From Perkinsela sp. CCAP 1560/9 (lineage: Eukaryota; Protista; Euglenozoa: Kinetoplastea), in contig CBFFSA010000003.1 in the NCBI GenBank assembly GCA_965644495.1, positions 1,116,001 to 1,180,000 of the forward strand: DNA of 64,000 bases. Reading direction: 5' to 3'. Of the stretch, positions 8,088-59,793 are shown in pieces (within the stretch, counting starts at the first letter, position 1; each line of letters starts with the position of its first letter). The translations under genes and the position numbers were made by a program. The notes beneath the pieces were generated by a model. The model searched no databases. It saw nothing but the letters and a program-made list of their open reading frames with translations, and was not told the DNA's origin.

Positions 8088-9413
8088 TCAATAGTCAGGA
8101 AAGTCTTCGTCCACTTCTTCTCTCCATCTATGTAGGCCTCCTACAACGTGAACCACATTTGCAACTCCGTTGGCAGCTAAAAATGTCACAGCGTGACTTG
8201 ATGCAACGCCTCGACGACATATCAAGTAAATATTGTGTTTCTTTACACTATTGGGATGATGAGAAGCATTACTATTAGATTTATCATTTTTTAGTAGCGC
8301 AGTGTTATAAACGTCTAAAGAGCAGGGTTGTTCAGAAAGTGACCTCACCTGTGCCACAAAGGACTCATTTTTTAAAAACGGTACATTGCTAACCACAAAA
8401 TTTGGCCATTTAATTGAACACATACTAAACTGCACCTCGGGTCGGACATCGACAACCACAATCTTCGGAGTAGTATTCGCCGCACGTTCGACCAACTCCA
8501 AAGGGCGCACACAGTTATCTGACGCAAGACACGCGGGGCGCTCACACACGTAGTCCTCACCATAATACGCAAAAACCGGAACCCCCCTCTCCCCCTTCCC
8601 TCTCCGTCTCCCCTCCCCACATCCCCCACAACCCCCCCGCCTCTCCCTCAACCTCACCGTCCGCATCGTCCCCAACCTCGCATTCCAATACACCATCCGC
8701 CCCGACAACACCTCCCCCCTCCCCCACCCCGCCGCCACCTTCACCACCTCCCCCGCCTGTACCGCCCCCATCACCCCCGGCACCACCCCCAGTACCCCCA
8801 CCTCCCCACACCCCTCCACAGCCCCTCCCCCCGCCGGTGGGGGCTCCGGGAACACACACCGGTAGCACGGCCCCCCGGCGTAGTGAAACACCGTGACGTG
8901 GCCCTCCCACCGCAGCGCGGACCCACTCACCAGGGGCTTCCCCAGCCACCCGCAGGCGTCGTTGAGCAAGTACCGGCTCCCCACGTTATCCGTGCAGTCA
9001 CAGATAATGTCGTAGGGCCGCAGGAGGGGTAACACATTGGAGGGATCAACGGCCACGGGGTACTCGTGCAGGGGTACCGTGGGGTTGAGCCGACGACAGG
9101 CCAGGGCCGCGGATTGGACTTTGGACATTTGTAGGTTTTCTGTGCTGTGGATGACCTGACGCTGGAGGTTGGAGAGCTCAACGGTGTCGGGGTCGACGAT
9201 GCCGAGGGAGGCGGCGCCCCCGGCCGCGAGGTAGAGCAGACAGGTACTGCCGAGACCTCCGGCCCCGACGACGAGGATGTGGGTGCGGAGGACGGAGGAT
9301 ACGCCGGAGGGCCCGAGCTCGGGGAGAAGGGCGTGACGGCTGTAGCGTTGGATCTCGGGGGCGGTGAGGTGGGGGGAGTGGAGGGAAGGGGAGATGGGGG
9401 GAGGGGTGGACAT
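8088..9413 (-). CDS. UBA4: Adenylyltransferase/sulfurtransferase MOCS3/UBA4 (MoeB + rhodanese)
   Basis: RYSRH, GAGGLG, SNLQRQ, DCTDN, PCYRC and the rhodanese motif CRRG. Confidence 0.95.
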   Translation of the reverse strand: MSTPPPISPSLHSPHLTAPEIQRYSRHALLPELGPSGVSSVLRTHILVVGAGGLGSTCLLYLAAGGAASLGIVDPDTVELSNLQRQVIHSTENLQMSKVQSAALACRRLNPTVPLHEYPVAVDPSNVLPLLRPYDIICDCTDNVGSRYLLNDACGWLGKPLVSGSALRWEGHVTVFHYAGGPCYRCVFPEPPPAGGGAVEGCGEVGVLGVVPGVMGAVQAGEVVKVAAGWGRGEVLSGRMVYWNARLGTMRTVRLRERRGGCGGCGEGRRRGKGERGVPVFAYYGEDYVCERPACLASDNCVRPLELVERAANTTPKIVVVDVRPEVQFSMCSIKWPNFVVSNVPFLKNESFVAQVRSLSEQPCSLDVYNTALLKNDKSNSNASHHPNSVKKHNIYLICRRGVASSHAVTFLAANGVANVVHVVGGLHRWREEVDEDFPDY

Positions 9414-9849
9414 TAGAGTGTGTTGTACATCATGATGAGGGAGGGAGGGGGGGAGAAGAGAATTGTAGATGGAAGGTAGAAAAAGATGGATTGAGTAAAA
9501 AGGATGAGGGGAGGAGCAAGATTAAAGGAAGAAAACTCCAGGGCAAATGAAGAAATGGATAAAAGGTCATTAGTTAATTACGCGTAAATTGATTCTTCTT
9601 TAAATTAATGATTTAAAATTTAAATGTCTTAATTTCTCTATTTTTGGATTTAGGATTTTCGTACGCATGGCTAGTAGCATTCACATACGCACTGTGAAAT
9701 CATTTAGTAAAAAATTAGACTCCTTCAAGTAAAACTGTATGCTAAAAATAAAGGAGAAAAATAAATCTGTTGCACTTCTTGAATATAAATCACTAGCAGA
9801 GTTTACGAGTCAATCCGATGAATACTCGACTTTCTCCAATTCCTACTTT

Positions 9850-12800
9850 TCAACTAAGGAAGCCTTCGAGAGATTGTCCAGTGGACTTTTGAACACTGCG
9901 GAGTAGTTGTCGAGCTTGTGTTACAACGAGAGGATCCGATTGCTCCATTATATTTGTAATTGGATTTAGAAGATCGCGGAGAAGAACGCCCATTTCTTCG
10001 CCGACAAATTGGTAGATATTATCAACAACACGCAGCACAGTTCGCTGAACGGCGATCCTGCACAAATCCCTCAGTGAAGGAGAAAATGTCTGATATTCTT
10101 GTACGCTATTGGAGGCTATTTTCAAAAGACTATTCTGAAGCTCACGCCATATCTCGGCTTTGCCGTGTCCCGAACAAAGTGCCATCTGATCCAGCGCGGG
10201 AACTATGTGTTCCGATAATTCCGTGGAAAACCCATTCTCAAGCTTTCGCAGGAATCGTAATTTCACGCTGTCATGTGGCACCCCTTTCAGATACTTCAAA
10301 ATAAAGCTAAGATGCCATGCAGGATTCATAATATGGTGAATCAACGCTGTGCTAAGGTCGGAATGTAGTTCTGGGTTTGTATCTGCAAGATATTCTCCTC
10401 CGCTCTCCGTTTGCGACAAGCGACGTAGAATTTGGGCGCAAGAAATAACACACTGTAATGCAAGATATACACTTTGATAGTGGGACTGAGAAAAGAAAGC
10501 CATCTGTGAACGAATATCCTCATCTTCTGACTCGATAAGGGCCCTTTTTCTTTTTTGATCGCTTGATTTCAAAGAAAAGAGATCCGAGATACATGACCAT
10601 AGCCAGCTATTCTCAATCTGTGTCGACTTAAGAAATGATGAAATTGTTTGCAAGTAGGGCACCAGAAACGTTGTGGAAACATCCTGAAATTTCTGTAGAA
10701 TGGCATATATGAGATCTAATCCCATTTGGACACGTCTTAAATTCGCTACAGTAAATTCGTGTTGTTGCTCACTCATTACTGTGTCACCTACCCCGGAAGA
10801 TACTGCTGCACTATTCGTATCTCTTGCACCAGGTTCTGATCGACGATCAAGCGCGAAACAGTGCATGATGAGCGTTTCGCGTAGAAAAGCCTCGTTATGC
10901 AGAGCAGTACCTTTGGCCATTGTGGCGACAAAAGCATTTATAAGACTCTGCTTGAGTTTCGAGTACATACTATTCGAAATTTTGACACACTCTTCAAACT
11001 CCAAGTCGCTTATGGGCATGCTTGCCGCGATTTGTATTACACTATGGAATAGTGGTTGAACAAGATTGGTTAACTTGAGAGATGTTACAGTTTCGGAATC
11101 CGATTTCTCAATGGTTTGCTTTAGTAGGGAAATAAGAAATATGGCTTGATGAAGATGACAATTTTCGATAGAGACAGTATTGTCCCCTTTGGAGAATAGC
11201 GCAAGTATGATGTGCAAAGAACGAACAATACTTTTCAAAAGAATTCGACTTTCAAGCCGCTGAACTAATTTGAAAAAGTCGTGACGCTCTTTTACTATAG
11301 TTGAATCATCATGATAAGCTCCAAATGACTGAAAAACAAGAAGTGGGCATATGCTACGCTCGCTTGCTAAAATCGCTGTGTTGAATGCATATGATCCAGT
11401 AATGTTAAGAGCAAGACTACATGCCTGCGCCAGTTCGACATTAATTGCACACAGATCACAAAGCTCCACGGATGAAAATATTTTCAGATAAGCTCTAGTA
11501 AGTTTTAAGCGAAGAGGGTCCCTGGTATTAGCTAGAATAGAAGCACTTGTTAACATTAAAGATGAAAGAAGCGGAATGTAGCACTTTCGAAATTTGATTT
11601 TTGTATCCTGAGAAATCAAATCTTGAACCGCGGTTAGCATGTCAGTTGTTACATTACTTGTCCGAGTAATTTCCAATGTGGATGGCGCGACAGATGGCTC
11701 GCATTTTTCAGAAAAAGTGTAAAAGGCCTTCTCTAAAAGGGATAACACGCGCAGTGCTAACTCTGGGAAAGCGTCAACTTCGGTTTTGTCCACGGCTTTT
11801 CCGATGGATTCATTTAGTTTCGCGTGTACAACACTAATTAATTCCCAAAACGCATTTTCAGTGGTGGAAGTCCATATTTCTTTCTCATTTATCGCTCCGT
11901 TACTGTCCTCTCCATTAAGTTCAGATTGCTTGGGTTGCATGGCAAGAGACAAAAGATTGAATGCTGACTCATGAAGCTCAGGATCAAATCGATTCATCAT
12001 AATACTCGACGCTTCAAAAATTGCGGACAATGAACATATCGCAAGAATTGTTTGACTTAGTGTTGTAGAATGAATACCCATTAGTGGTAACGCACGTGTT
12101 GTGGAAAGATAAAGCATCTTCATGCTATTCACGGTTAATTGATTTTGTAGTGGTAGAAGAGACCGAAGGCACGTTACTGTGAAATAAACGACTTCTTCTG
12201 ATTTGCGATCAACAAGACCAATTTCTTTTTTATGCAGCTTGGGGGTGACAGTGTACTCAGTGCTTGTTTTAGATATCCCTGAAGCAAGCACAAGCAAGTC
12301 AAGAATCGAAGAGTATATTTCGGTCTGAACAGATGGATCGTACTTCGCGAGAAAATTCTTTAAGACAGTATCAGTCATATTGTCAGGGTATTGCAGATGT
12401 AAAATCAGTAGGTGCGAAAAGAAGTTCACAAGATTACGACTAGAGATGCACGCAGGACTTATCCAGCCGTGCTCACTGGATAATATGTAGTTCACGTTTT
12501 CAACTGGCAGATTCCCTTGTGAACAAAGACATAAGATGTCTTTCAAGTGAGAAATAGCGCACGAAAGATCTAGAGAGATATGATCATCATACTCATTCTC
12601 TGTGGCATCATTTTCTTGCACAGTGCGGATAAATTCAAGACGTTTATGCGTTGCTTGAACCACTTCGCTAAACAAGCTCGAATTTATTGAAAGAAGCCCA
12701 ATCTTTGATATAATTGAGAAACTATCTTTGGGCCACATACTCCCGAACGCACACCGACCGAACACACGAACTTCCAAAGTTGTCACTTGAATATCTTCAA

Positions 12801-15800
12801 CAATTTCATGTCTTTTCGGCTCTACGAGAAAGCGTTGCAAATCTTTCAGAAGATGTTCCGATACCAATTGCATAAGACCGCAAACTGCGCCGCGGGCTGG
12901 ACAAAGCTGATTGCTTCTCGAAGTATCAGTTAGGGCCCCATCCCAGTGGGAAGACAGCAAAGCACACAAAAAATGAAGTCCATCACAAACAGATTTACCA
13001 CGATCAAGAGAGTGAAGTAGACGAATAAGCCAAGAACAAAAAAGTTTTTCCAAGATTGTGTTGTACTTGACGTAGAGTAAGAAGGATCCTCGAGTCATTT
13101 TCTGACGCAAATCATGAAGCCAATGACTTTCGTTGAATGGCGAGGCTTCAGCGGAAGCTTCACCAGACATTTTAAACAACAGTTGCAGTAATGGCTCAAG
13201 ACTAGCTTCTGATGCCTCTAACACCTTTTTATCGGTCTGGAGCTGATGCTCGAGAAAAAAATACATAAATGTTGCAACGAGGAAGTCAAAAGAAAACGTT
13301 TCGCCAGTAGTTGTGTTTGCTTCATCTGAGTCTTGCTCGTTCCATTCATTTAGCACCTGCGCAGCATCGAGCACCGTATTGGAGGTGTAATCAATTGCAC
13401 ACAGCATGAAGAACATCAAACAACTATTCCGATGTTTTCGCAACCCTTTCCTGCTTACATCATACAAGAGTTTATTCGACATGTGTCCCTCTGACACAGG
13501 ATTAAGAAAGGGAAGTAGATCACGTTGGCCTGAAAAGCTCGCCCTTACTGTAGCACAAATAGATTTCATTGTTTCGGCGAGATTGCTTAGCTCAGTCCTA
13601 TTTGCAGCATTAGTTTTTTCAATGCGAAATAACAAAAGCTTCAGAAAACAAGAAAACCCACTGGAAAGCATAATTGAATCAACGTCATCATTCAAAATTT
13701 TGTCTCCAGCGCTAACGGTGGGATTTAAGCCATACGCATATTTCGTAAGAAGGATTTTCAATGCAGCAACGCTCGACTTTGAAAAAGAACTGTCTTCAAC
13801 GAAAGAAAGTCGAGAAGCTTTCGAAACTACCTTATAAAACTCCGGTTGCGTTTGTAATCGATAAAGAGCTACAAAGGTTGGTACAGCGTACTCAATGTTC
13901 AAGTAAATAGGTCCTGTTTTATTCGGCTCTTGGTCAAGAACATAGCTCAGACCCAACATAACAGCGCGTATTTCACGTGCTTGCGTTAGAACATCGGACA
14001 AAAAACAAGTCGCTTTCCCAGGGATGTTCAAGGGACAACTACCTTTGCCGGATATCCACATGCTTTCAGTGGAAAAATTGGAGTGCCAAACAAGAGCCAA
14101 ATAATCAAAAACCATTAAATTTTCCTTTCGAGATATATCTTTGCTTATCCCGATGTGAATCATGTGCAAGAGCAAATATACGGAGTTCTGATAAAGCCGC
14201 ACAGCATAAGATTTTGCACTGTGGCTTCTTGCGCCGTAAGTTATGCATCGGAGTAGGCCAACAGATAAGTCCGGCTCCACCCGAATTTCATGTGGATTTA
14301 AACTTGTAAGTTGAGAAAATCCACGTCGTAGAAACGAAAGGAGACACTCGAACTGTTTTTGAAAATCCGGAACGTTTGTCATTAAGGCAGTCGCCAACAA
14401 TATTAAGGCTAGAAGCACATTGTTTGAGCACATTTCTTGCTCTTGATTCGAAGTAACGGCTTCTTGGACAACCTCTTGCAAATTCTTGAGGATTCCAGTG
14501 GACACCCAAGATTTTTCTATTGATAGAGCTTGTAGCAGATGTGAACTGAAATAATTCAATGAGTCAAGATCAAGCCGAGAAGCGAAAATTTCATTTTTCG
14601 TATCAGCTTTTGTTGCTAGCAAAGAATCTTTCCACTTGATTGCATTGATCCGAAGTGCGAGAAGGAGCTTCTGGGTCCTGATTCTATCGCAATTTTCTGA
14701 TTCTGATTTCGAAAATGAATTCTTGCTAATCTCTGCAAGTACAGATTCCATTGTTGCTAGCAAAGAGCACCACGGTTCTTCCGTCGTTGAGACCACATCG
14801 CTCTCTACTTGACTCAGACAACATGAAAGACCTTTCAATACCTTGTCAACATTCTCAACATCGGGACCATTGTTCAAAATTGCAGTCAGAATGCTTTTGA
14901 TTTCAATCAAAAGCTTAGCCATGAACCCTGCGCCATCTTCGTCGTCGAAGCTCAAGTACATAAAATTAACAAGCAATGATAAAGCCACATCACGTTGCGA
15001 GTCGTTTGCAGCAGTTTTCCACTTTTGCATTATAACGCTCACCGAAGCTAAACGCAAGTCCCAGTTTGGATGCTCTAATACCCAAATTAAAGGAATTTTA
15101 GCGGACTCTTGTGAAATACTAGCGTACCGAGGATCATCCCCAAAAGCATGGGACAAGGCATTGGCAATTGATAGAGCTTTTTCCAATGAAATTTCTTTAA
15201 ACGCTTTTGACACGAATGCGTCAAACACTGTAGTGTTCCTTGCACGCAAGGTCTTCAACAAATTGATATAGGCAGGGTTTTGAGGTGGCATGTCACAAAC
15301 TGGCTCACTTGCTTCTAGCAAGCTTATGGTGTTATGTAAAAGAGTGACCGTCATTATATGTGCAGGTTCCTCACTTTCTACTGTATCTAGTCGAAGAATA
15401 CCAACGCGAAGAAAATACATCAACACAGTAGAAGTTGTTGTATCCGTCAGAGATGAGTATTGTAACACCGTTTTTAGTACTCTGTAAAACTTCGCTCTCA
15501 GAGCTTCGTGCTGCATTACATTGTGAAAGAGGAACACACTAAATACTGAACCGGATGCCGGAGTGGAGGCAGACCACGGAATATCTTTCCAAAAGTTTTG
15601 CGCCCACGACGCAGCAGTCGGATTAACTCTCGCTGAAACCAAGCTGAGAAGCGTGCCGAAATATAAGCAAACACTATTTTTTTGTTCTTCCATTCTTGTG
15701 CCGTATTCGGCTATACGTTCCATTGATTCACAAATCGAACGACAGCTATCTTCAAATACATCGTTGTTCAGGCTAACTATTTGATTTACTGCAATCATAA

Positions 15801-16560: not shown

Positions 16561-16708
16561 GGTCCAACACACGCAATAGGAATAAATAAATAATTTCTAT
16601 ACAGCAACAATAAAGGTGAAGATGTATTTAAGATTTTTAATTCTATATTAAATTAAATTCTATATTATATTTTGACCCCCCGCTCCTACCTATTTAAGAT
16701 AGGCTTTA

Positions 16709-17794
16709 TTGACGGATAACACTATGGATAATCTATTTAAGGATAAAATCGACTTTTCCACATCGCCGTGGTACCAAATCGGGAAAGGCTCCCTCACATC
16801 AGCATCAGCTGGCGATTATCGCCAAAAAGAACGCGGAAATCTCTTCAATCTGGGACATAAAGATGGAGTGCCCTCAGACCTCACAGGAGGTCGAGGAACA
16901 TCGCCCAGCGAGCACCGCCAGGGCTTTTGAGGCCGACTTCTCCAGGGCACAAGACGACATTATTTCTCAATGGTTCACCTTACTCTGCCAGGACACTAGG
17001 CGGGAACATAGGGAAAATTAATCGAGGATAGGGCACATCTGTGCCACGCATGCGGGCTAGTTTTCATGGACCAGCGAATGATTACGGAACACAAATTCGT
17101 CCACGAGCACGCGGCGGCCCGTGCAACCGCCCACATTCTCGAGGAGCATAACGCGTGGCTGGGCGAGTTTCAGCGAATCGCTCATTTAAACGGACCTTAT
17201 GCAGGGCCCCCGGAGAGCGGGAACATCGTAGACCCGCCACCGCCTCCTAAGGCTGACACCCCTCCTATACGGCCACTGTTGTGGGGAGCACACGGCTCAT
17301 CGGCGAAGCCCCTTCCCGTCCCCCTGCCTCTCTCCCTCCCGAACTGAGGGAAGAGGAATGGGTCAGGGTAAACCTGAATCTGGGGCCCCTCGTCATGGGT
17401 CGTATCCTGGTTGTGGTGCCCCCCGGATGCCTCTTCGTGGTCTGGTGCACGTAATGGGCCTCATGTTCGGGGTCTCGCCGGACCGCGTGTGTCTCACCAA
17501 CGAACTTGGAGGCCCCTGGAGACGAACGAGGACTTGGGCGCCTCGGCCGACATGTGGGCAACCCTGCTGGTCCCTCACAATGACTTGCATCCTTCCATCA
17601 TGTAAGGGTGTTCGACCGATGGCTCATGCATCAGAACGGATGCCCCGATTCCCGCGCAGAATATCCCTTTCTTCCTGTTTCGCTCGCTCGCTTTAGCACA
17701 CCGCCTCGCATGTGCCTGGACCCTGTTTGAGGTTGACGCCGGGTCAGTGTGCTGGTGCATCCTCTGAGGGGTTATTTGTCTGAGGGGTTATTTG
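16709..17794 (+). pseudogene. Degenerate antisense reading frame with C2H2 zinc finger; probable retroelement relic
   Basis: ORFs 16709-16930 and 17066-17347 are in the same frame, separated by stops. CHACGLVFMDQRMITEHKFVH (starting 17042) fits C-x2-C-x12-H-x3-H. The region is GC-richer than its flanks. Confidence 0.55.
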
Positions 17795-18057
17795 CCGACT
17801 CCGTGCCACTCCGCGGTTATACCATGCAGCAATGAACCATTCAAAGCTTCAAAAACAAACTTCGTACAAAGATACGAAGCACGACTAAACTCAAGGGAAA
17901 TAATAAGCATGGTACTACTGAGCACTAGGCACATTGTCATAGTTTCGAAACATTGCGACATCCACAATTCAGCATTCTACTTCATACCAATGCGAATGCA
18001 TTCATGCCAATCTACATGCATCATAGTACTTATCAATCCCAGTCTGATGCAGTAATG

Positions 18058-19543: not shown

Positions 19544-20604
19544 CTGTGCCCCCCCCACTTATAGTGCCGCGGTTTTCGACCAAACGGCACTATAAGTGGG
19601 GGGGGTAGCATGTTTCAGGTCGAGGGTGAAAATTTTTCCACCCTCAAAAAAAAAAAGCGCGCCGCTCTTCTTTCTATTACTGTGACCCCCCCCTTATACT
19701 TCGCCCATTTTGAGCAGTAACGAAGTATAAAGGGGGGGTCTGAATTTTTTCCCCGCTGTAAAAAGAAAGCCGCCCCGCTTCGCGGCGCAGCTCATCCAGT
19801 TTTCCTGTCTTTCCTTTTATACATATATAACCTTCCATTTCTAGAAGGAAAGGTATAGAATGTTCTTGTTTTTTCTAAAACCTTTAGAAAAATTACGAAA
19901 AAATTACGAAAAAATCGTCCCCCCTTCAGGGGGGGGAACACAAAAAACGAAGTATAAAAGGGGGGTCTGACCAGCGAAGTATAAAGGGGGGGTCACAGTA
20001 TGTAGTTTTGAGTGCCTAAGCGCTGTAAATCGTGTTTATGCTCCAGTGCTGCGCATGTGCAATCGTGTGATGGGATGTTCAGGGGGGTGCAATAATGCGC
20101 AAAAGATGTCTGGATGAGTAATGTGTGGCAGAACACGGTGAAATAATTCCATGAAGTACGTGACTCGATTCTAGAGATCCGAAAGAGAAATCTACAAACT
20201 GTAAACCCGAATGCCCCCTAACACTCATGGCGCGTTTACAGAGCAGGGCGACATTTCGCCTTCCCCGGACAGTCTGGCCCAGCTCCTTGAGAGGGGCTAG
20301 CTGCGTACACTATACGCAGTCCAATGTCCTGCGTGGAAGGGCCACGAGTGTGCGCTTTGTCCGGCGCCTCGTTTTCGTGAGAACCAGCAGTCATGGAATG
20401 TATGAAGGGAACTAATAATAAAGTCTCAATGATTTCCATAAATGAAAATGTTAGAAATTTACAATATATTTACTCCACCTTTTTGGTCAAAAAAGAATTG
20501 GTCAATTTTTTTTTCGGACATTTTTTTCCAAAACGGCACTATAAGTGGGGGGGTACCCCGCGGCACTATAAGTGTCGGGGGGGCATAAGTGGGGGGGGGC
20601 ATAG
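19544..20604. mobile_element. Outer MITE (TIR CTGTGCCCCCCCCACTTAT), TA-flanked
   Basis: TA|CTGTGCCCCCCCCACTTATAGTGCC ... ATAAGTGGGGGGGGGCATAG|TA, with four GGCACTATAAGTG subterminal motifs. Confidence 0.8.
19680..19998. mobile_element. Inner nested MITE (TIR CTGTGACCCCCCC...TATACTTCG), TA-flanked
   Basis: TA|CTGTGACCCCCCCCTTATACTTCG ... CGAAGTATAAAGGGGGGGTCACAG|TA, with four CGAAGTATAA motifs. Confidence 0.88.
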
Positions 20605-46921: not shown

Positions 46922-47962
46922 TTAAGACTCCGTACTAGACGCCGTTGTCATCGGAACGAGGTGCACCACGGAAGCCCTTTTAAGAACCACGGCAAATTTT
47001 AATTCCGGATACTTATTGCCTTCGCCCATACTTGCTGTGTGAATCGTTTCCTCATTTCGAAGCCACGTCACACAGCCATCCTGATAGTTCACCGAAACAG
47101 TGATGTGATCCCCATCCGTAAACGACTCCGCGGTTTCGATTTTCCGATGGCTCTCAAAATTCGCATACAACACCCCACTCATGTAGTACACTGCACACTG
47201 CGACAGCTGGTGAAACTCCGTACCTTGATCCACAAACAACCGCGACACCACCCCAATCCCGACATAGTCCGCTCGTTCCACATGAAACTCCTGCGTGTGC
47301 GCTCCCTCTCTCATCCACCCCTCCCCACACAAGCTCACCATGTAACTTGACCTCACTCTTTTCTTGGATTCCTCCACCCCGGGGCCGGGTACGAAGGTCC
47401 ACTCCTCGACCGGGTGTAACCCGAGCAGCGGTTTCATACTCTCCAGTCCGTAGTAGTGCACATCACAGGAGAGCAGGGCGAGCTCCTCCGGGGGCACCAC
47501 CACGGGGTAGCCCCTTAAATAGTTAAGCACGTGACGAAACGCCCTCCCGTCGCGGTCAATAAAGTAGTGACCGTTCGGGTCGGTGGGGAGGAAGGCGTCG
47601 GGGTTGCGGAACGCGAGGGCGAGTAGGCTGCCGGGTTCTTTTTGGAGCGTAAGGGTTGTGGTACGGTAGCAGGTGCCGCCGACGTTGAGGGTAAGGAAGG
47701 GGGAGGAGGAGGAAGATTCCGGATGGGAGGGTGGAGGGAGGTCGGAAAGGGAAATTGCCGCGTTGGATGACGTTTCGGAGGTGTGGGAGTGTTGAGGAGT
47801 GGCGCCGCTGTTCGAGGAGGTAAGATTGAGGAGGTTGGAATCATTTTCGAGTTGTGTGGGGCAGGAGGAGGAGGAGTCCTTGTGATGCGGTATGGGTATG
47901 GTGTCGTGCGGAGTATGGGACGAGGGTTTTACCATGCGTTCTCCCCGAATTCGCTTTCCCAT
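46922..47962 (-). CDS. KCTD-type BTB/POZ (T1) domain protein with C-terminal SPRY-like domain
   Basis: LNVGG...TTTLTL...GSLL...YFIDRDGRAFRHVLNYLR, and SPRY-like YVGIGV...FTDGDHITVSVN. Confidence 0.85.
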   Translation of the reverse strand: MGKRIRGERMVKPSSHTPHDTIPIPHHKDSSSSCPTQLENDSNLLNLTSSNSGATPQHSHTSETSSNAAISLSDLPPPSHPESSSSSPFLTLNVGGTCYRTTTLTLQKEPGSLLALAFRNPDAFLPTDPNGHYFIDRDGRAFRHVLNYLRGYPVVVPPEELALLSCDVHYYGLESMKPLLGLHPVEEWTFVPGPGVEESKKRVRSSYMVSLCGEGWMREGAHTQEFHVERADYVGIGVVSRLFVDQGTEFHQLSQCAVYYMSGVLYANFESHRKIETAESFTDGDHITVSVNYQDGCVTWLRNEETIHTASMGEGNKYPELKFAVVLKRASVVHLVPMTTASSTES

Positions 47963-48238
47963 GGAGACAATATACAAGTATTATAAAATATGTAGAGTAA
48001 AAGTTAAATCTGTATGAGTAAAGCTTTGCTTGGGGTTTATTCGGTGTGTTCTTCACAGCACCTATGGACCAAAAGTACACCGTTTAATAAAGGAGACTTT
48101 GGCTTACTGTAACCCCCCTGTTTTTACTTCACTTACCAGTTCCCGTTGTTTATGCTTCGTTTGTCAGAAATCCGGGCCGATAGCTTGACGAAATACAATC
48201 AGATAAACACTTTTTTACTAAGTGGAACAACCAAAATA

Positions 48239-49136: not shown

Positions 49137-49211
49137 GATGAACGAATTGTGTTGAACAGTTGGTTATACTGTACACTTACTATGACAAGTGTACGGTATA
49201 ATGAATTCTTC

Positions 49212-50843: not shown

Positions 50844-51114
50844 TTTATTAAAAATTTGATCAGCCAGACAAGATTCGCATATGATTGAGCATGGCTTGTT
50901 TAGTAACTTTTTATTGTTGATTAGGTTTTATTCGTTAACAAAGATATTAAAATGGTGACGAAGAAATAGATGGCTTAAACTTAATAAAAATTGTCCACAA
51001 TGAACACATTTTTAGAACTAAATTTCAAACAAAGTAAATGAATCCATCTAAAGTCATTCAAACTAAGAGACTCACGAGAACACGAGATTGGCACGAGGTG
51101 CTGTGCCGGGCACA

Positions 51115-51226
51115 GTGTGCTCAACAGACTATTCTTTGCTAATAGTATCATGTTCATCTGTTCACATAAGGTGTGCACAACAGACTCTTCTTTACTAATA
51201 GTACCGTGTTCATCTGTTCACATAAG
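51115..51226 (+). repeat. 56-bp tandem duplication (2 copies)
   Basis: GTGTGCwCAACAGACT...GTTCATCTGTTCACATAAG occurs twice. Confidence 0.9.
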
Positions 51227-51288
51227 GACATACTGCAACTATAACTGGAGATCACGTGCCTCCCTGCAGATACCCACACCCATAGTGA

Positions 51289-54165
51289 CTAGTTGACACC
51301 AAACATGCCACAAAGTTCTTCAAAACTTCCGTCCAAACAGTGTTGCGATAAGTTCACAAAAGACATAGACTTATTGGTCGAACCCGGTTCTTTCTGCCGT
51401 GTACCTTCTGCAGAATCGTTCTCTAGCATGTTCTGTGTATGTTGCCACTGATGTATCAGGTGTGAGATGTTAACACAACCCGAGGCCCCCTTCATTTCTT
51501 GAGGATATGAGAGATTCAGAATGTCGCTCTCTATAGAATCTTCCGCCACATACCGTGTCACGGCTAGAGGTCTTGTACGTCCGACATGACAAGCTCTTGT
51601 GAGAACGCGGTACTCAGAGAGCGGTCCGCTAGCGGAGGGCTCCATGAAAAAAATATGGTCCGCAAAGGAAAGTGATAGCCCGTACCGAAATACCTCGTGG
51701 CAACCAATCACAACGGGAGGACCTATCAGCGGCTCCAAAACATCAGTCACAGCTAGAGGACACGTTTCATCTTGTTCCTGTGATTGTTTCGAAGTCCGCC
51801 TCCGCTTTGCTTTGGATGGTCGATCAGAAACAGTTTTTCCTTCACCTGTGCCGGGTGTTGCCAACGATCGTACTCTGCGATCAATAACTTTTCCGTGTAT
51901 TAAGTTTCGCACATGCATTCTACGACGCACCGAAGAAGGTAAAATCAGTGTGGGTATATTTTTCTTAGCAAAGGCATCTGCAAGAATTGAAACGTAAGGG
52001 ACAAATTCTGTCAGAACAACAAAGCGAACCAACGATTTTTCCGTTGAGCCTCGGAGCTGTAGAATGTCGTCCACCACTCGATCGGTCTTTGAGCTACATA
52101 TCCATGATGCATCCAGGTCTAAATTGGCAATAGTAGGACCATTACAAGCGCTGCTTGGCTCCTCAGTAGGCGAACTCTGTGTCAACCCGAAATTTTGAGG
52201 AATCGCAACGGCCTCTGAATATCCGGTTCGACCCTTGCAAAACGGACATTTCGAATCGTGTCGGTTTAAAACTTGGCGGCAGCAGGCAGAGCACATTCGA
52301 TGACCACACGGAAGAAGCATACCGCGTTCATTTCTGTACTCCTCAAAGCAAATACCGCACTCCGCGGATCCCTCGCTGTTTTCCTCAGCTTCAATTTTCA
52401 AGTTTTGGACAACGTTCTTGATGAACTCTTTTGAATGACCTTTCTTACCTTTGCTTCCTCTCCCCTTTCCCGAGTGGGCCACACCAAGTTTTCGCAGAAA
52501 ATTTTCCATCACTGCTTCGTCCTGTCGTTGTCTATGAGTTTCCGCTTCTTGAAGTTGCTCAGCTCTCGACACATCTCCTAGCAACTTTCTCCTTTTTTGC
52601 AATAGGGATGATACTGCTAAACATGGATGTACAGTAGATTGACGCAGTCTCATGACCATTTCAAATACATGCGCTCGTAACATCGCATCAAATAGTAACT
52701 TTTCTCTTGCCATGGAAAATTCCCCGTGCTCATTTGCATCCATTTGTTGAAGTGTACGTTGCCTCAAACGCAGTTTCGCCGCACCAGTATTTCGCACACA
52801 TGTATAAAAGTGCTTTTGGGTCTCTTCCATGGGTAACGCTACCGACGTATAGGTAATGGATGGTTTCTCAAGTTGTGGCACCACTGGTTCATCTGTCGCC
52901 AAGCATTCCGTTCTACGCAGGGTGACTTCCTCCATGCTCGTCATAAACAGCGATATCGTATCGGGTGACCATTCAAGATCTCCCTCTGGTGGTGCGTCAA
53001 AGAGCACAGTTACCGGATGACGCAAGAAACGAAGAAGGAGCAAATTTGGTACCAAGAGAGTGGATAAAAGCGGTCTGGCACTCACGATCCATCGGTACTT
53101 CGCTTCGAGTAGAAGAATATCCTCTTTCCACTCCCGGTCTAACGTATGAACGGCATGAAACTCATCTAAAATAATACGATTCCAGAAGATGGAGAGAAAC
53201 TGCGACCTACTGGAAAGGTCATCGTTCGCTTCCCATTGGCTTCGCTTCACGTCTTTGTGTAATGCGGTGTATGTTGTCACTATGAAGTCGTACCCGCCAG
53301 CGATTTCGAAAACATTTTTCTTGGAAAGAGCCGATTTCCCTCCTGCGTGGCATAATATTCGGGGCCTGGGGAAAAGCGAGCGTTGTATTTCATAGATCCA
53401 TTGGTCCAGAAGACAGGGTAAGGTAATAATGACAGTAGAGCTGGATACCACTTTACCGTCTCGGATGTGATCACGCGACATTGACGTCCTTTCAGCGCAT
53501 AGTGCAATGACGGTTCTCATTTTTCCCATCCCATGCGGGTCCGCGAGAATACCTCCAGGGATATCAGAGTTCTCACGTGTGTGCATCCATTCCACGGCAG
53601 ATATTTGCATTGAGTGTATTGGTGCAGACAAGGACATAATTTGCGAAGATGTTGCATTACGATCAATATGTCCTTTTATTTCCGTCGTCTTTGAATATCT
53701 GGAATGCAGCTTCTCTGAAGCTTCAGACGTGTCCTTATGACCTAAGTCATGCATCCTCTTCGTTGATACCATAGAAGTGGGGATTCGTATGGCGTTTGCA
53801 TTTGCATCAATCTCGTCTTCAACTTCAAGATCGACTTCCGGCGTATCCTCAGTAGTGTGATTTGTTGTGTCGCAGTCCTCCAGATCAACATCTCCGTCCA
53901 GTGTGTTTTCTATTTCTTCAAAAGTGGTGGACACGGCTTGTTCGGTAGATGCAGGTTCCAATTCCTTCATAGAATCGTCGTGAGATGGAAGAGGAGCTGT
54001 TTCTATATCTTGAACACGTGATGCAATCTTCTCATTACTGTGCGGAGTATCTGCCTCTTCCTTCGTTATTTCGAGGTCAGCGATTTCGGTGTTCTCTTTT
54101 TTTGTTGAAATAATGGAAGTCAAGCTACGGACGTTTCCCCAGGTTATAAAATCGTCATCCTGCAT
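51289..54165 (-). CDS. SNF2 helicase-like protein with inserted C3HC4 RING (Rad5/Rad16 family), divergent motifs
   Basis: GGILADPHGMGK, WNRIILDEFH, RLRQSTVHP and RING CGICFEE...LPCGHRMCSAC...CPFC. The start is uncertain (ATG at 54204 or 54165). Confidence 0.85.
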   Translation of the reverse strand: MQDDDFITWGNVRSLTSIISTKKENTEIADLEITKEEADTPHSNEKIASRVQDIETAPLPSHDDSMKELEPASTEQAVSTTFEEIENTLDGDVDLEDCDTTNHTTEDTPEVDLEVEDEIDANANAIRIPTSMVSTKRMHDLGHKDTSEASEKLHSRYSKTTEIKGHIDRNATSSQIMSLSAPIHSMQISAVEWMHTRENSDIPGGILADPHGMGKMRTVIALCAERTSMSRDHIRDGKVVSSSTVIITLPCLLDQWIYEIQRSLFPRPRILCHAGGKSALSKKNVFEIAGGYDFIVTTYTALHKDVKRSQWEANDDLSSRSQFLSIFWNRIILDEFHAVHTLDREWKEDILLLEAKYRWIVSARPLLSTLLVPNLLLLRFLRHPVTVLFDAPPEGDLEWSPDTISLFMTSMEEVTLRRTECLATDEPVVPQLEKPSITYTSVALPMEETQKHFYTCVRNTGAAKLRLRQRTLQQMDANEHGEFSMAREKLLFDAMLRAHVFEMVMRLRQSTVHPCLAVSSLLQKRRKLLGDVSRAEQLQEAETHRQRQDEAVMENFLRKLGVAHSGKGRGSKGKKGHSKEFIKNVVQNLKIEAEENSEGSAECGICFEEYRNERGMLLPCGHRMCSACCRQVLNRHDSKCPFCKGRTGYSEAVAIPQNFGLTQSSPTEEPSSACNGPTIANLDLDASWICSSKTDRVVDDILQLRGSTEKSLVRFVVLTEFVPYVSILADAFAKKNIPTLILPSSVRRRMHVRNLIHGKVIDRRVRSLATPGTGEGKTVSDRPSKAKRRRTSKQSQEQDETCPLAVTDVLEPLIGPPVVIGCHEVFRYGLSLSFADHIFFMEPSASGPLSEYRVLTRACHVGRTRPLAVTRYVAEDSIESDILNLSYPQEMKGASGCVNISHLIHQWQHTQNMLENDSAEGTRQKEPGSTNKSMSFVNLSQHCLDGSFEELCGMFGVN

Positions 54166-54374
54166 TTCCTGAAAACATAAAAAATGTGATGTTAACAAGG
54201 TCATATGCTGCTGTGAACAAAGCATAAACGCATGTAGATGTACATGTACGCGAAATATGACCCCCCTGTGTAATAAAAATTGTCACAAAAAAGTGATTTC
54301 AGAGAAAATTTTACAGAGCCGATTAAGAGCGAGACATTGAATACATTTACATCCGAGATCTACCGACCTATGCG

Positions 54375-56027
54375 TTACCTTCGAATCTCGAGTGCCTTTT
54401 CCAAAAATTTTGCTTTTCCCACTAACTCAAAACACTCCTCGCGATACAACTTGAGCGTATTTTCTAAGAACGTGATGTGCTCAGACTTTTCGTTTTGGGA
54501 ATGGGAAGCAGCACTGCTGTTTAGCAAAATCGACTCCTTGTTCTCCGAAACAATATCTTTGTTTGGCAACACATACTCCTTTTCATCGGCTTCAGATGGT
54601 ACAAGATTTGCTGGAATAACATATGAGTCAAGATCTTGCACTGGATACTTCTTCAGATGACCAACCTGAAATTGGTTGGCATTTGGCGTATGAGTATGAG
54701 GAGCTCCGTCTGTGATTGAAAGCATAACATTGGGCAACACGTCGAAACGAGAGGTACTACACGCTCCAATTGAATTGACTGAAGATTGACTTTTTAAACG
54801 TCCAGTGATTTTCCATGTAAATATTCTACCACAACTTGTTGTGGCGTAAATGGAATTCTCGTCGAAAGCAATCTGAAGTATCCGTTCATTTTCTTTTTCA
54901 GAAGTCTGTGGAAGCAGTAAATTTTGAACACGTGATAGAACGGGGTTTATATTCACGCTTCGAGCATTAGCCGTTGTGTTGCAGAGTTTTTCCTTTTTAC
55001 GCGCTTGCGAAAAAACCAATGAAAGTGAATCTTCAACTAAAGGTTCCAGCTCCCGGTTTTCCGTAGAGCTTCCAAGAGTGAGTTTTCTTCTTTCCCAAGG
55101 TGAAACTTCTCTGGCATCTTCTTGCTGCTCAATAGCATTTAGTTCGTCGAAAAATATGTCCAAAAGGTGGATTTTTCCATCTGAAGTTAATAGTGCAATG
55201 TATTTTTCGCATTGGCTGATTTCAAGATGGGTGACAGGGGAATGAAAGCCTTCCCTGAGTAAACATTTCCCAGATAATAAATCAGCTACAGTTACCGTGC
55301 AGTCCGCCGATGCCGCGGCTAACAGTGAATTTGTGCTAGGAAAAAAGAGTACCTTGTGAACCTGAGCTCGATGATAAGAAAGTTTCTTAAATTCGTGAAT
55401 CGGCAAAGTACTTCTTTCCATTGATATCGATACATCGTTGTTTGCATCGGATTTCATAGTCACTGATAATCGTATCAAATCAGTTAGATACCAAATCTTT
55501 ATTACTCCGTCACCTCCCGAGGATGCAATATACTGATTTCGGGGACAGATATTGAGGGAAGCTATTTTTCCAAGGTGAGCGGCTATGATAGCACGCATTA
55601 AATTTCCTGTTTGCACATGCCACGAGAAAATTGTACCTTTCTCTCCAGCACCAAGTACAAATTCCTGATCATGTGAAAGAACTAAGCAAAGCACAACCTC
55701 TGTTGTAGCACAGGTCAGTATATTGGTCTTCCCTTTGGAATAATGCTTTTTCTCGTTGAATACTCCGTCGCCCCTCTTCGCTGACTCCGTATCATCTGAG
55801 CTTGATAGAGCAAACTTATGAATCTTAATACAAGGAGGATGCCGATGACATAGAAACAAGGCGTCATAACGATCAGCGTAGCAGGCAGCCGATATCGGAT
55901 CGTCTTTGTTCGTTTTCTTATTCGCATTGCGAAGAGGAATGAGACATGCTACGCAGGATAGCGCGTTGGTCTCTGTTTCAATCCACTGAGCTGTATGTGG
56001 CTCACATGATATGGCCAATAATTTCAT
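54375..56027 (-). CDS. WD40 protein, IPI3/WDR18-like
   Basis: GTIFSWHVQTGNLMR...AHLGKI...SSGGDGVIKIWYL and a C-terminal coiled coil. Confidence 0.6.
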   Translation of the reverse strand: MKLLAISCEPHTAQWIETETNALSCVACLIPLRNANKKTNKDDPISAACYADRYDALFLCHRHPPCIKIHKFALSSSDDTESAKRGDGVFNEKKHYSKGKTNILTCATTEVVLCLVLSHDQEFVLGAGEKGTIFSWHVQTGNLMRAIIAAHLGKIASLNICPRNQYIASSGGDGVIKIWYLTDLIRLSVTMKSDANNDVSISMERSTLPIHEFKKLSYHRAQVHKVLFFPSTNSLLAAASADCTVTVADLLSGKCLLREGFHSPVTHLEISQCEKYIALLTSDGKIHLLDIFFDELNAIEQQEDAREVSPWERRKLTLGSSTENRELEPLVEDSLSLVFSQARKKEKLCNTTANARSVNINPVLSRVQNLLLPQTSEKENERILQIAFDENSIYATTSCGRIFTWKITGRLKSQSSVNSIGACSTSRFDVLPNVMLSITDGAPHTHTPNANQFQVGHLKKYPVQDLDSYVIPANLVPSEADEKEYVLPNKDIVSENKESILLNSSAASHSQNEKSEHITFLENTLKLYREECFELVGKAKFLEKALEIRR

Positions 56028-56455
56028 CCTATTTCAAGATGTAGAAGCCTGACGCAAGGAATAATAAATTCATGTATCTGACGCAAATACGCAAGGTACT
56101 GGAATAATCGGCACTAAGCTCTAATAGTAAAAGGCGAATACATAACATAGAGTGTTGTCAAGCATTTGAAAAAACGCTTTGCTATAAACTACAAGCACAA
56201 CAGCAAATGTTATCTGGGGAACAACTTTCTGGGGAGGGGTTATAATTTATCCATAAAGAAATCACACTCTGACGCGTAATTAATTGCCATGTCTTTTACT
56301 AATGTCTAGTAATCTAGTAGTAAATTATGATGCAACAGTTTTCGACAATGTCGTGTAGAAAGTAATGTGGAGAAAGTGGGCCTTTTAAATGATTGAGAAT
56401 GATACAAAAAGGGGGACAACCAGCGGCTACTGATATTACTAATCGTACGCTCTCG

Positions 56456-56947
56456 TTACTTTCTCTTCCATGTCTGTATCACTGAGTCAATAAAGTTATT
56501 TTGCATTGTGGATGACCAGTTCACTAATTTCCCCTCGCGAGACACCATCTTCCGAAATTCGTCCTCACCTTTTTCTTTCAAAAACGCCACACCGTCCTCA
56601 ATTTGAGAGGATCTCGCTGTGTTTTCTAGACCATGAACACCATGCGGTGCCAAGAATGTGGAGAGTTCGCGATTCGTGTATGCTGTAAGAAGAAGCCGAT
56701 TGATTTGTCGCGTGCACAATTCTTGGTCTTTTTTAGACATATTCTGAGATACCCAGCTCTCCAAGTCAGATCTCCAATTGGTTCCAAAACTTTTCTCGAC
56801 ATAACTGAGGCGCAAGGGTACTTTATTCTTGAAAGCGGTCTCTCCAATCAGAAGATTATAGAGGACCTGACATTTTTTATTTAGATTTGATTCTGTTGCG
56901 GAGAGCTCGACAGCGGCCTGAAGCTTACGAGGTAAAAAGCGGTACAT
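56456..56947 (-). CDS. ATPTB4: Mitochondrial ATP synthase subunit ATPTB4 (Euglenozoa-specific)
   Basis: Collinear, as I recall it, with T. brucei ATPTB4: LLxGExxFKNKxP, FGxNW, RQIxR, YTxxEL, TAR, IExGVAFxKxKG, NW. Similar length. Confidence 0.8.
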   Translation of the reverse strand: MYRFLPRKLQAAVELSATESNLNKKCQVLYNLLIGETAFKNKVPLRLSYVEKSFGTNWRSDLESWVSQNMSKKDQELCTRQINRLLLTAYTNRELSTFLAPHGVHGLENTARSSQIEDGVAFLKEKGEDEFRKMVSREGKLVNWSSTMQNNFIDSVIQTWKRK

Positions 56948-57156
56948 ACGGCCTTCTTGATTTTGATAGATGATATGGATAGAAATACGTAACAGAAGGA
57001 TTTAGCAAGTAGTATAGTAAGTACAGGTCCTGTCCCTATTAGTTACACATTGTACACTCTATATATTTAACTGCACCTGTAGATACTAAAGATCCTTGAA
57101 CAAAATGACAATCAAATCACAAATGACACTACCAAGTTGAAAAAAAGAACCCACCG

Positions 57157-59793
57157 TCAAGACGTCAGATACTCTCGAAGTTCACTACTTGTTTGCTCAC
57201 GGTGTCCCATAACCAGAATCAAATCCACCGCTGAGAGGGTTTCCTTCTCCATCAACAGACCCTGCAGGGCACGAACTTGTGACTCGTGGGATTCGATCAA
57301 CGCCCGAGCCTGGTCCCGAGCCCGGGACACCCATTGCGCCACTGCCCCGTCTACGGCCCTCTCCACTACCGAGCCGTAAGGCTTTTGTACCGCAACCTGA
57401 TCCTGGCTTTCCGGATAGGAAAAGTGTCCGACCTCCCCGGGACACATCCCATACCGCACGACGCATTGGTAGGCCAGCCCGGTGGCTCGGTTCATATCCT
57501 CCGCCGCACTGGAGGAGAGCTCGGAGAGGAAATACTCTTCAGAGGCCACCCCGCCTAGCATGTCACAGATACGCTCCTCGAGCTCTGCCTGGGTTTGTAT
57601 GTACTTCTCATGAGGGAGCTTTTGATTTACACTGGTACGGTCGCCGCCATATTGTACGATAGAGACCTTACACACCGGGTCGACGTGACGAAGATGCCAG
57701 TTGACCACGGCGTGACCCGCCTCGTGGAACGCGAGGCGCTTTTTCTCACTGGGTGTCAGCACACGAGATTGTCGCTTGAGTCCGATTTGCACGCGCTCCA
57801 TTCCTTTTTGAAAGGACTCCATGTCCACTGAGGTCTTGGACTCACGGGCAGCAATAATGGCGGCCTCGTTGCAAATGTTTTTGATATCCGCCCCCGTGTT
57901 GCCTGGGGTCAGGGAGGCTAGCTTCTTCGCTGTACCATCTACAGCTTCAGCCGACCCGGCGGTAAGTTTCAGTGGTTTTAAATGCACTTTAAAGATCTCC
58001 ACGCGGTCCGGGTAGGGCGGAGGATCAATATGTACGCGCCGGTCAAACCGCCCCGGACGAAGCAACGCCTCATCTAAAATATCCACCCGGTTCGTCCCCG
58101 CAATCACCACCACCCCCGCATGCGAGTGAAACCCATCCATCTCCGACAGCAGCGCATTCACCGTGTTATCCCCCTCACTTTGTCCCATCCCTCCCTTATG
58201 CGCCATCCTTCGTGACTTTGCGAACGCATCAATCTCATCAATAAACACCACACACGGGGCCGCCTCCCTGGCCGCCACAAACAAATCCCGCACCCGGGAG
58301 GCCCCGACGCCGACAAAAATCTCCACAAACTCACTCCCGGCACAGGAGATGAAATTCACCCGGGCCTCCCCGGCGACCGCCTTCGCGAGTAACGTCTTCC
58401 CCACCCCCGGGACCCCCGATAACATAATCCCCTTCGGCACGGTCGCCCCGAGCCGGGCGAACCGCTGGGGGTGGGCCAGGAACTCCACCACCTCCCGCAC
58501 CTCGTGCTTGGGCTCCGCCATCCCGGCAATCTCCCCGAACCGGGTCCTCGGTCGCTCCTTGATGAGTTTAAAGAAGTGCTCCCCGTTGGCTTTGGTCCCC
58601 CTCGCGGGGGCCCCGAAGAGACTTAGCGGTTTGGCGCTCAGGGCGGAGCGCGCGAGGCGGAAGCGGGTGTGGAGGACCGCGAGGAGGGGGAGGAAGGCGA
58701 GAAGGAGGAGGGGGGTCCAGGGGAAGCCCACGGTGTAGCTGTAGTAGAGGGGGCGCTGGGGGTGGTGGGGGTCGGGGTGACTACTCGTGCTAGTGTGGTT
58801 GTGGTCGTGGTTCATGTTTTTATGAGTAATGTTAGTAGGAGAGGTGGGTTGAAGCCTCTGGGATGGGGAGGGTGGGGTTTGAGCTTCACCTCGAAAGGGA
58901 CGAAAAAGGGAGGAGAGGACTCCGGTGAGGGAGGAGAGTGGGGACCAGCGTGCGTTGTGGTCGACCGTGAGGGAGGGGGGACCGGAGGTGGCGAGGAGGA
59001 AACTCTCGAGGTGGGAGAGTGTGGTGAGATGGAACCGGAAATGGGAGGTTGCGGGGTGGGCGGTGTGGGGGAGGTAGACGATGGCTTCACGCTGGGTTGT
59101 GTGGACGTGGATGGAGTCCACAGGGTTGCGAGGGTCGAGGAGGTAGGAAATGCCGTCGGTCTCGGAGACCGTTCGAATGTACCCGTCGCCAAAGTAGCGC
59201 CGGTAGACGTAGTATAGCGCGTATCCCGTGATCCCACCTTGAATGAGACGAATCGCAAGCTGTCGAAAGGCCATCTTGGGGGACTCGCGGGCGAACTCAG
59301 CGAAATGATGCCATCGTCGCTGTAGCCCCTGGGGATACGCGTAGTGTTTTTCATATTCAATAATCCCCCTGGCGTCGGTCTCGGAGGCGCAGGAAAACCC
59401 GATTGGTTTTCGGGAATTTTGAGATGGAAGGATACTGGATCCCACTTCCGCCTTAGCACGGCTGTTTTCAGTGTCGTGTACAGGAACACCAGGAAAATTA
59501 AAATAGGCACCGAAAAAGGGGTGTGCCGGACGATCAGGTTGGCTAAGTGGCGCAGGAGTCACTGGCTTGGAGGGTGTGGCTGTTTTTAACTTCTCCGTGG
59601 CAGCAGGATGATCATCCGTTCCTTTCGCGTACGATGCTTTTACGACTTGTTGAATTGGTTTCGTTGTCTCGTTCAGCTGAAGTTTTTTCAAAGCCTGTTC
59701 CTTAGCCAAGTTTTGGGAACGCTCCTTTCCTGTTTTCTTTGATGGAATGTTTGTGCCGGACTTTGTTAGACCGATAAGGCATTTCCGATACAT
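57157..59793 (-). CDS. Mitochondrial m-AAA metalloprotease (FtsH/AFG3/paraplegin family)
   Basis: Two TM segments, GVPGVGKT, FIDEID, ALLRPGRFDR and HEAGH. First ATG at 59793. Confidence 0.93.
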   Translation of the reverse strand: MYRKCLIGLTKSGTNIPSKKTGKERSQNLAKEQALKKLQLNETTKPIQQVVKASYAKGTDDHPAATEKLKTATPSKPVTPAPLSQPDRPAHPFFGAYFNFPGVPVHDTENSRAKAEVGSSILPSQNSRKPIGFSCASETDARGIIEYEKHYAYPQGLQRRWHHFAEFARESPKMAFRQLAIRLIQGGITGYALYYVYRRYFGDGYIRTVSETDGISYLLDPRNPVDSIHVHTTQREAIVYLPHTAHPATSHFRFHLTTLSHLESFLLATSGPPSLTVDHNARWSPLSSLTGVLSSLFRPFRGEAQTPPSPSQRLQPTSPTNITHKNMNHDHNHTSTSSHPDPHHPQRPLYYSYTVGFPWTPLLLLAFLPLLAVLHTRFRLARSALSAKPLSLFGAPARGTKANGEHFFKLIKERPRTRFGEIAGMAEPKHEVREVVEFLAHPQRFARLGATVPKGIMLSGVPGVGKTLLAKAVAGEARVNFISCAGSEFVEIFVGVGASRVRDLFVAAREAAPCVVFIDEIDAFAKSRRMAHKGGMGQSEGDNTVNALLSEMDGFHSHAGVVVIAGTNRVDILDEALLRPGRFDRRVHIDPPPYPDRVEIFKVHLKPLKLTAGSAEAVDGTAKKLASLTPGNTGADIKNICNEAAIIAARESKTSVDMESFQKGMERVQIGLKRQSRVLTPSEKKRLAFHEAGHAVVNWHLRHVDPVCKVSIVQYGGDRTSVNQKLPHEKYIQTQAELEERICDMLGGVASEEYFLSELSSSAAEDMNRATGLAYQCVVRYGMCPGEVGHFSYPESQDQVAVQKPYGSVVERAVDGAVAQWVSRARDQARALIESHESQVRALQGLLMEKETLSAVDLILVMGHREQTSSELREYLTS

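Follow-up and report, generated by a model that had tools for sequence, protein, structure and literature searches.

Intragenic GC-rich islands with a uniform C-to-G skew flip in a kinetoplastid genome: possible footprints of recombination initiation

Analysis of 64 kb of DNA from the kinetoplastid Perkinsela sp. CCAP 1560/9 (G000:C3:1116001-1180000, in a parent genome of 21 Mb and 110 contigs; this whole stretch is called the window below) revealed three GC-rich islands, each of which lies in a different gene and changes on the plus strand from C-rich to G-rich at a central pivot (Table 1). All long open reading frames (ORFs) of the window are on the minus strand. An earlier examination of the letters by themselves (the sequence-only reading) had described three C-to-G flips of this kind in unrelated genes of an AT-leaning background, and this was confirmed: with islands called in 300-bp windows at GC >= 0.55 and skew taken in 100-bp bins, their GC is 0.57-0.61, compared with a background of 0.44. 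Across the three islands, third codon positions go from about 75% C to 75-93% G, and the pivot of island 3 falls at about codon 400 of its FtsH-like host gene.

Table 1. Positions of the three islands and their host genes in the window (aa, amino acids; UTR, untranslated region; L027 belongs to a second public assembly)
Feature	Position	Strand	GC	GC skew	Pivot	Details
Island 1	8372-9571		0.61	-0.79 to +0.89	~8835-9008	
Arms of island 1						C-rich to ~8930; G-rich to ~9570, ~100-150 bp beyond the ATG into the 5' UTR
Host of island 1, MOCS3/UBA4-like gene	8088..9413	-				ThiF and rhodanese, 441 aa
Island 2	47105-47980		0.57	-0.48 to +0.70	47551-47576	
Host of island 2, BTB/POZ-domain gene	46922..47962	-				346 aa; PF02214, E = 4e-14
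Island 3, GC-rich tract	57131-59464		0.59	-0.50 to +0.61	58603-58627	
Strong arms of island 3	57962-58602; 58603-59273					C-rich; G-rich
Host of island 3, FtsH-like AAA and peptidase M41 gene	57157..59793	-				878 aa; Pfam families of the L027 gene

Within the MOCS3/UBA4-like gene, read along its coding strand, the frequency of C at third positions (C3) is 0.75 in codons 1-80, while in codons 201-240 the frequency of G (G3) is 0.93 and C3 is 0.00. Total GC at third positions (GC3) is 0.75-0.93 inside the island. Neighbouring genes have about 0.38, and the last 120 codons of the host gene itself have 0.25-0.42; its final ~160 codons are of ordinary AT-rich composition. The invariant residues of the protein are retained, and variable residues have changed to P, S, T or H in the 5' arm and to G, V, A, E or R in the 3' arm.

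The scan was carried out on 264 kb of contiguous sequence, made up of the window and the adjacent 200 kb (L003-L022), which contain about 15 strong islands. When these 15 were piled up, GC was 0.69 at the pivot and fell to 0.45 by 600-700 bp, forming a triangular peak. In the left arm C rises to 0.43 and G stays at about 0.18-0.23; in the right arm G rises to 0.46 and C stays at about 0.17-0.19. A and T drop together; some islands show a flip of A/T skew as well, which averages to about 0 over the islands. The GC skew has a mean amplitude of +/-0.4 and a maximum of +/-0.9, and its mean has faded to about 0 at +/-700 bp. Left and right arms are of similar strength, both in the pile-up and at four-fold degenerate sites, where the coding-strand composition is A 0.12, C 0.54, G 0.20 and T 0.14 in the 5' arm, A 0.11, C 0.15, G 0.63 and T 0.12 in the 3' arm, and A 0.28, C 0.19, G 0.20 and T 0.33 in the background. 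A and T are equally lost at these sites, so transitions and transversions are driven alike. The change is a strand-specific replacement of weak by strong bases (A or T by G or C; W->S), neither an exchange of C for G nor deamination, and a model with a deaminase only was rejected because the loss of T equals that of A.

The effect extends to every codon position and to the UTRs, with most of the signal at third positions. The arms extend 100-550 bp past the ends of ORFs into UTR or spacer, and in one case an arm fills the entire spacer up to the next gene. Amino-acid usage tracks the bias, with P, S, T and H increased in the 5' arm and G, V, A and E in the 3' arm. Changes in UBA4 were polarised at the first two codon positions, in columns at which nine outgroup MOCS3 proteins are conserved: those inferred for the G arm comprise 11 to G (A>G 5, T>G 4, C>G 2), three to C and four to A or T, while those of the island-free tail comprise 13 to A or T, five to G and three to C. 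At conserved columns of BCS1, polarised changes were too few to read. CpG is undepleted (observed/expected 1.02), for which reason decay by CpG methylation was rejected. Motifs for G-quadruplexes (G4) are almost confined to the strand that goes 5'->3' outward from the pivot: 25 of 38 plus-strand motifs lie at 0 to +800 of a pivot and one at -800 to 0, and 10 of 18 minus-strand motifs lie at -800 to 0, with none on the opposite side. Inspection of the 15 pile-up islands by eye found no common motif at the pivots. RNA pairing between the two arms did not exceed that of sequences shuffled arm by arm (z = -0.7 to -1.7), and a selected RNA or DNA hairpin between the arms was rejected, since composition gives as much pairing.

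To express polarity in numbers, a position was counted as a flip if skew was below -0.2 on its left and above +0.2 on its right at GC >= 0.55, and as a mirror flip if the signs were reversed. In the 264 kb, 1490 positions were counted as C-to-G flips and none as mirror flips, and every strong island is C-to-G. Among ORFs that contain a C3-rich as well as a G3-rich stretch, C comes first in 12/12, and G-to-C sign changes are restricted to AT-rich spacers, island edges or gaps between adjacent islands. A codon-periodic pattern, (CNN)5C N{300,330} (GNN)5G, was then counted in the whole genome with the pattern read backwards as control, which yielded 4064 matches compared with 328. Polarity is therefore uniform genome-wide, whereas random polarity was what the sequence-only reading had named as refuting it. 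Scaled from the 54 matches in nine clusters within the 264 kb, the genome would contain several hundred detected clusters and roughly 1000 islands, or about one per 20 kb. The same C-to-G order is found in a plus-strand gene elsewhere in the genome (L026). However, "C first, then G" is identical on both strands, so uniform polarity cannot separate a chromosome-anchored feature from a gene-anchored one.

The cruder count of C6...G6 (784, compared with 498 reversed) was dropped as a measure of polarity in favour of the codon-periodic pattern, because it is confounded by an unrelated family of hairpin repeats. These are AT-rich palindromic hairpins of about 50-60 bp with a run of at least six C at the 5' end and at least six G at the 3' end, seen in the window at 19549-19605 (perfect stem of about 21 bp), 19686-19738 and 19919-19965. 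Genome-wide, C7 N{20,50} G7 has 478 matches and G7...C7 has 167; most listed matches are hairpins, with differing stems. The family is dispersed in spacers and has the rule "C first, G last" in common with the islands.

All three window islands are present in the second public assembly, which is identical at 99.68% over 19.4 kb (L023) and at 99.986% over 20.9 kb (L027, where islands 2 and 3 are both found); a further sequence (L028, 99.9% identity) holds five more islands from the adjacent 200 kb. Island 1 is spanned by Logan contigs of three samples, including a 17-kb contig at depth 63. Both assemblies and the Logan contigs apparently come from a single study, possibly with overlapping material, so their independence is limited. 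Abrupt changes of composition within single genes are what an assembly chimera, contamination or a sequencing artefact might produce, and the indel differences between assemblies do cluster in islands; however, reading frames and invariant residues are unbroken across the islands. Because the second assembly and the contigs of three samples carry them, the islands are not chimeras, the concern that the sequence-only reading had raised against itself, and we regard an artefact of any of these kinds as so improbable that it can be set aside.

The genome is patchily heterozygous, with several recombinant haplotypes around island 1. A 2.2-kb patch at 8300-10546, roughly centred on this island and bordered by about 3 kb and about 8 kb free of differences, contains 11 single-nucleotide polymorphisms (SNPs) and one indel between the assemblies, and the Logan contigs of the three samples show at least three recombinant haplotypes there. 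The patch could be a conversion tract, as a single case that proves nothing. Five of the 11 indel events between the assemblies fall within about 11 kb of island DNA, at 47536, at 9449 and in L009/L010 (window coordinates -130232, -129887 and -129859). The indel at 47536 falls within the coding sequence of the BTB gene, of which just a 130-aa fragment is called in the other assembly, and the gene at the island near -130.1 kb is broken into two ORFs 45 bp apart in the present assembly. Either errors at runs of G or C or genuine instability may underlie such differences.

Four prokinetoplastid loci with BCS1 orthologues (72.8 kb; three from assemblies in the European Nucleotide Archive and one from Perkinsela) were read for comparison, and no position in them satisfies the flip definition given above. 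The BCS1 genes of these relatives, which are distant (50-59% protein identity), have balanced C3 and G3, while BCS1 of the present genome goes from C3 0.62 to G3 0.65. Since the orthologues are free of islands, the islands arose in the present lineage rather than being an old property of their host genes, and the trait is, to judge from these sequences, lineage-specific. As to the lineage itself, beta-tubulin shares 91% identity with Leishmania and Trypanosoma and 89% with a Perkinsela sequence, and the best matches of the BCS1 protein are Prokinetoplastina sp. PhM-4 (58%) and Perkinsela (52%), with trypanosomes lower (45-46%). The organism was accordingly taken to be a prokinetoplastid that lacks closely related sequenced genomes. 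In L029, a transcript contig from public data that matches the genome at 99.8% identity, the first 16 bases, GTTTCTGTACCTTGTT, are unmatched; they are unencoded at the locus and look like the 3' end of the kinetoplastid spliced leader; the splice acceptor of its gene is thereby placed 48 nt upstream of the ATG.

Besides the three genes of the window, hosts of islands include genes for a thymidylate kinase, BCS1, a RanBP zinc-finger protein, a DnaJ protein and proteins that match no Pfam family, while the equally conserved genes for Cox11, SNF2, RecQ and AMP deaminase have no island. Genes of average length are favoured (median 420 aa, P = 0.03), and pivots are found mid-ORF, 260-1530 bp from the ATG. 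Of the ORFs in the 264 kb that are 200 aa or longer, about 13% show a strong effect and about 30% a detectable one. Island-free genes have flat C3 and G3 along their length, with no general gradient. Tubulin, which is presumably highly expressed, has a modest GC3 (0.55-0.65) and no flip, which argues against translational selection; selection on codons for translation was rejected on this ground, together with arms that reach UTRs and the flatness of island-free genes. No RNA run was found to contain the locus, and scans of metagenome contigs and exact-protein look-ups for transcripts or orthologues of island genes returned no match.

GC-rich sequence is also found without a flip. In the flanking 200 kb, GC-rich skew-free stretches are retrotransposon ORFs. 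Two ORFs with RVT_1 similarity lie on the plus strand within the minus-strand gene array, at L022:5186-8074 (strong support, E = 6.6e-32) and L019:4970-6685 (weak, below cut-off); both are GC-rich (GC3 0.51 and 0.67, inside GC-rich stretches) and have no skew flip. Just left of the window, a piece of about 600 bp that carries an RVT_1 gene call in the other assembly (L023:19420-20012) is absent here. The three weaker look-alikes that had been suspected in the window did not hold up: the one at 3.6 kb has GC 0.54 and a slight G-to-C trend, the one at 17.3 kb has GC 0.58 and no flip, and the one at 29.9 kb is not GC-rich. A 1-kb stretch at 16832-17850 (GC 0.58, no flip) contains no ORF of at least 150 aa and has no Rfam match, and an Rfam search of the window returned no match either.

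Taken together, the data show that the islands are neutral footprints of mutation or fixation and not adaptations: at roughly 1000 fixed points, A and T have given way to G and C for about 600 bp to either side, the new G is always on the strand leading 5'->3' outward from the centre, and the pressure is so strong that third codon positions are saturated and amino-acid usage is shifted. The arms are about equal although all genes are transcribed one way, so a bias of unidirectional transcription does not explain the islands, in agreement with the sequence-only reading; the same equality argues for a process at the level of DNA that diverges from the pivot. The outward polarity emphasised in that reading indeed fits a diverging process, as at bacterial and human replication origins or at divergent start sites. 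Its broader proposal of a fixed chromosomal element is supported as a class of explanation, in that the feature is recurrent, strand-symmetric and of fixed polarity. The specific choice of an origin or a promoter is not supported.

We tentatively favour, with less than even confidence, the reading that the pivots are long-lived hotspots of recombination initiation, that is, of double-strand breaks, with strand-specific GC-biased repair. Each pivot would be a narrowly placed break hotspot from which conversion tracts spread outward. On each side, a new donor-derived strand running 5'->3' outward would pair with the old 3' tail in a heteroduplex. By default, nick-directed repair would act as restoration and remove the new strand, while A or T opposite G would be excised by glycosylases such as MutY or an enzyme specific for G/T, with the result that G wins only when it is on the new outgoing strand. 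Acting together, restoration and the glycosylases would produce all three observed features: the rise in GC, the even depletion of A and T, and the C-to-G polarity. In line with hotspots, the islands are local peaks of GC and GC3 that decay from the centre and match, in extent and profile, the conversion tracts of a stable hotspot. W->S changes are found in transitions and transversions and at synonymous and non-synonymous sites, and transitions and transversions are driven alike as in GC-biased gene conversion, unlike in deamination. One strong base rises per arm, and the complementary one barely moves. Genes for SPO11, MND1 and a MutY-type enzyme were found in the genome, its patchy heterozygosity and the recombinant haplotypes around island 1 also count in favour, and the strength of GC-biased conversion is typically lineage-specific. 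A variant with breaks in flanking intergenic DNA that resect inward was rejected, since neighbouring genes have no mirror-image arms.

Several points weigh against hotspots. Classical GC-biased conversion is strand-symmetric, whereas a single strong base is gained per arm here, and the skew requires the repair model proposed above. Hotspots in organisms without PRDM9 are usually in nucleosome-free intergenic DNA, and the pivots lie within ORFs in 15/15 cases, compared with a coding fraction of 0.60. In three haplotig comparisons, islands had no higher density of SNPs (8 in 11.2 kb) than the sequence outside them (42 in 49.8 kb). The polarity of the islands fits a replication origin or a divergent promoter equally. 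Human meiotic hotspots show strand-asymmetric C>N and A>N mutations on single-stranded 3' tails (PMC7615360), an asymmetry that, as we read it, would yield the opposite polarity.

That the pivots are instead fixed and efficient bidirectional replication origins is unlikely in our judgement, yet far from negligible. The exposed lagging-strand template, which runs 5'->3' outward, would be damaged, and error-prone synthesis opposite the lost bases, e.g., dCMP (deoxycytidine monophosphate) insertion of the Rev1 type, would turn them into G. An upward jump from C to G at the centre is the universal polarity of origins, and similar asymmetries begin at human CpG islands (PMC2817419), which have a GC-rich core and also a signature of gene conversion. 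The sharp switch, the similar strength of the arms and a density of about one per 20 kb are likewise origin-like. However, the skews of origins and CpG islands span tens or hundreds of kb, while those of the islands are gone by about 700 bp on each side instead of persisting along each replichore, are of far larger amplitude and lie in coding sequence; we know of no origin-linked change of composition of such size. Comparison with mapped kinetoplastid origins points both ways. Putative origins of T. cruzi from marker frequency analysis (MFA-seq) are about 1.08 kb long, have 65% GC compared with 40-44% and are enriched in coding sequence (PMC7310030); they are concentrated in DGF-1 genes and subtelomeres, no skew flip was reported for them, and their signal could partly reflect GC bias of sequencing. 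Sites mapped in T. brucei by sequencing of short nascent strands (SNS-seq; PMC13179062) and in L. major by DNAscent (PMC12890776) belong to the same broad group and, like the islands, show strand-specific G4 placement around a centre. Unlike the islands, they are AT-rich (in T. brucei flanked by poly-dA/dT), intergenic, depleted of coding sequence and low in nucleosome occupancy, and the plus-strand G4s of T. brucei are upstream of the centre, the reverse of the islands, which have their plus-strand G4s downstream, all 15 pivots in ORFs and GC 0.69 at the centre. The pivots also offered no common motif to the eye. It was these AT-rich intergenic sites, the opposite G4 placement and the short reach of the skew that left the earlier choice of an origin unsupported.

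Cryptic divergent transcription starts, or sites of R-loops and G4s, would give G both ways on the displaced non-template strands, as G accumulates at mammalian CpG-island promoters and in the G-tracts of trypanosome start regions. The polarity fits, the G4 motifs are almost wholly on the outgoing strand, and a GC-rich element about 1 kb long, G-rich on the non-template strand of either direction, is like a CpG island in size and GC content. We nevertheless consider this explanation improbable: the pivots fall mid-way in coding sequences, within long arrays of genes that face one way, unequal arms would be expected from sense transcription alone whereas the observed ones are similar in strength, and a loss of T equal to that of A is unexplained by deamination of an exposed strand. 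The pattern might also be anchored to genes, through conversion by reverse-transcribed, end-resected mRNA or through selection on mRNA for C-rich 5' and G-rich 3' halves. The confinement of pivots to ORFs, the preference for genes of average length, the many islands that cover roughly one gene and the reverse transcriptases in the genome would agree with this. Yet GC is highest at the pivot and not at the ends, the arms pass the ends of ORFs, arm pairing does not exceed that of shuffles, the BCS1 orthologues of four relatives are without the pattern, island-free genes show no gradient, and no spliced-leader or retrogene relic was found in the window. Anchoring to genes is thus quite improbable.

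Among known systems, peaks of GC-biased conversion at stable recombination hotspots in birds, dogs and yeast, with extreme cases in gerbils (PMC7403616, PMC6573468), resemble the islands in being lineage-specific peaks of GC and GC3 at the kilobase scale, with W->S changes at all codon positions and conserved proteins altered against selection; the effect of the islands on proteins resembles the runaway GC evolution of gerbils (PMC7403616, PMC6573468). They differ in that the islands gain one strong base per arm with a sharp switch of sign and lie in gene bodies, and that hotspot activity of the islands is putative. Mutagenesis at human meiotic breaks (PMC7615360) also leaves a point-symmetric footprint, 1-2 kb wide, which involves single-stranded DNA and translesion polymerases. 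As we read it, C and A are lost on the 3' tails, giving a G-rich left and a C-rich right side, the opposite of the islands, and its signal consists of rare variants, that of the islands of saturated composition.

No published description of such islands was found in the literature searched. It is conceivable, if rather doubtful, that the pivots are undescribed fixed intragenic initiation sites, either constitutive origins or places of breakage, at a density of about one per 20 kb, combined with a repair or synthesis of the type "anything-to-G on the outgoing strand" that arose in this prokinetoplastid lineage. If this is true, sequence alone would provide a map of about 1000 initiation sites at base-pair resolution, in a lineage with a novel mutator or repair bias. 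Maps of initiation normally require SPO11-oligo, SNS-seq or bromodeoxyuridine (BrdU)-nanopore data and are barely known in kinetoplastids beyond trypanosomatids; if the pivots mark initiation of recombination or replication, the genome itself records the sites at near base-pair resolution. The islands represent a non-adaptive force that rewrites conserved proteins, which is relevant to the analysis of codon usage, to estimates of dN/dS (the ratio of non-synonymous to synonymous substitution rates) and to the phylogenetics of the lineage. Strand-specific W->S replacement is not predicted by textbook GC-biased conversion or by replication skew, and its cause could reveal a new repair bias.

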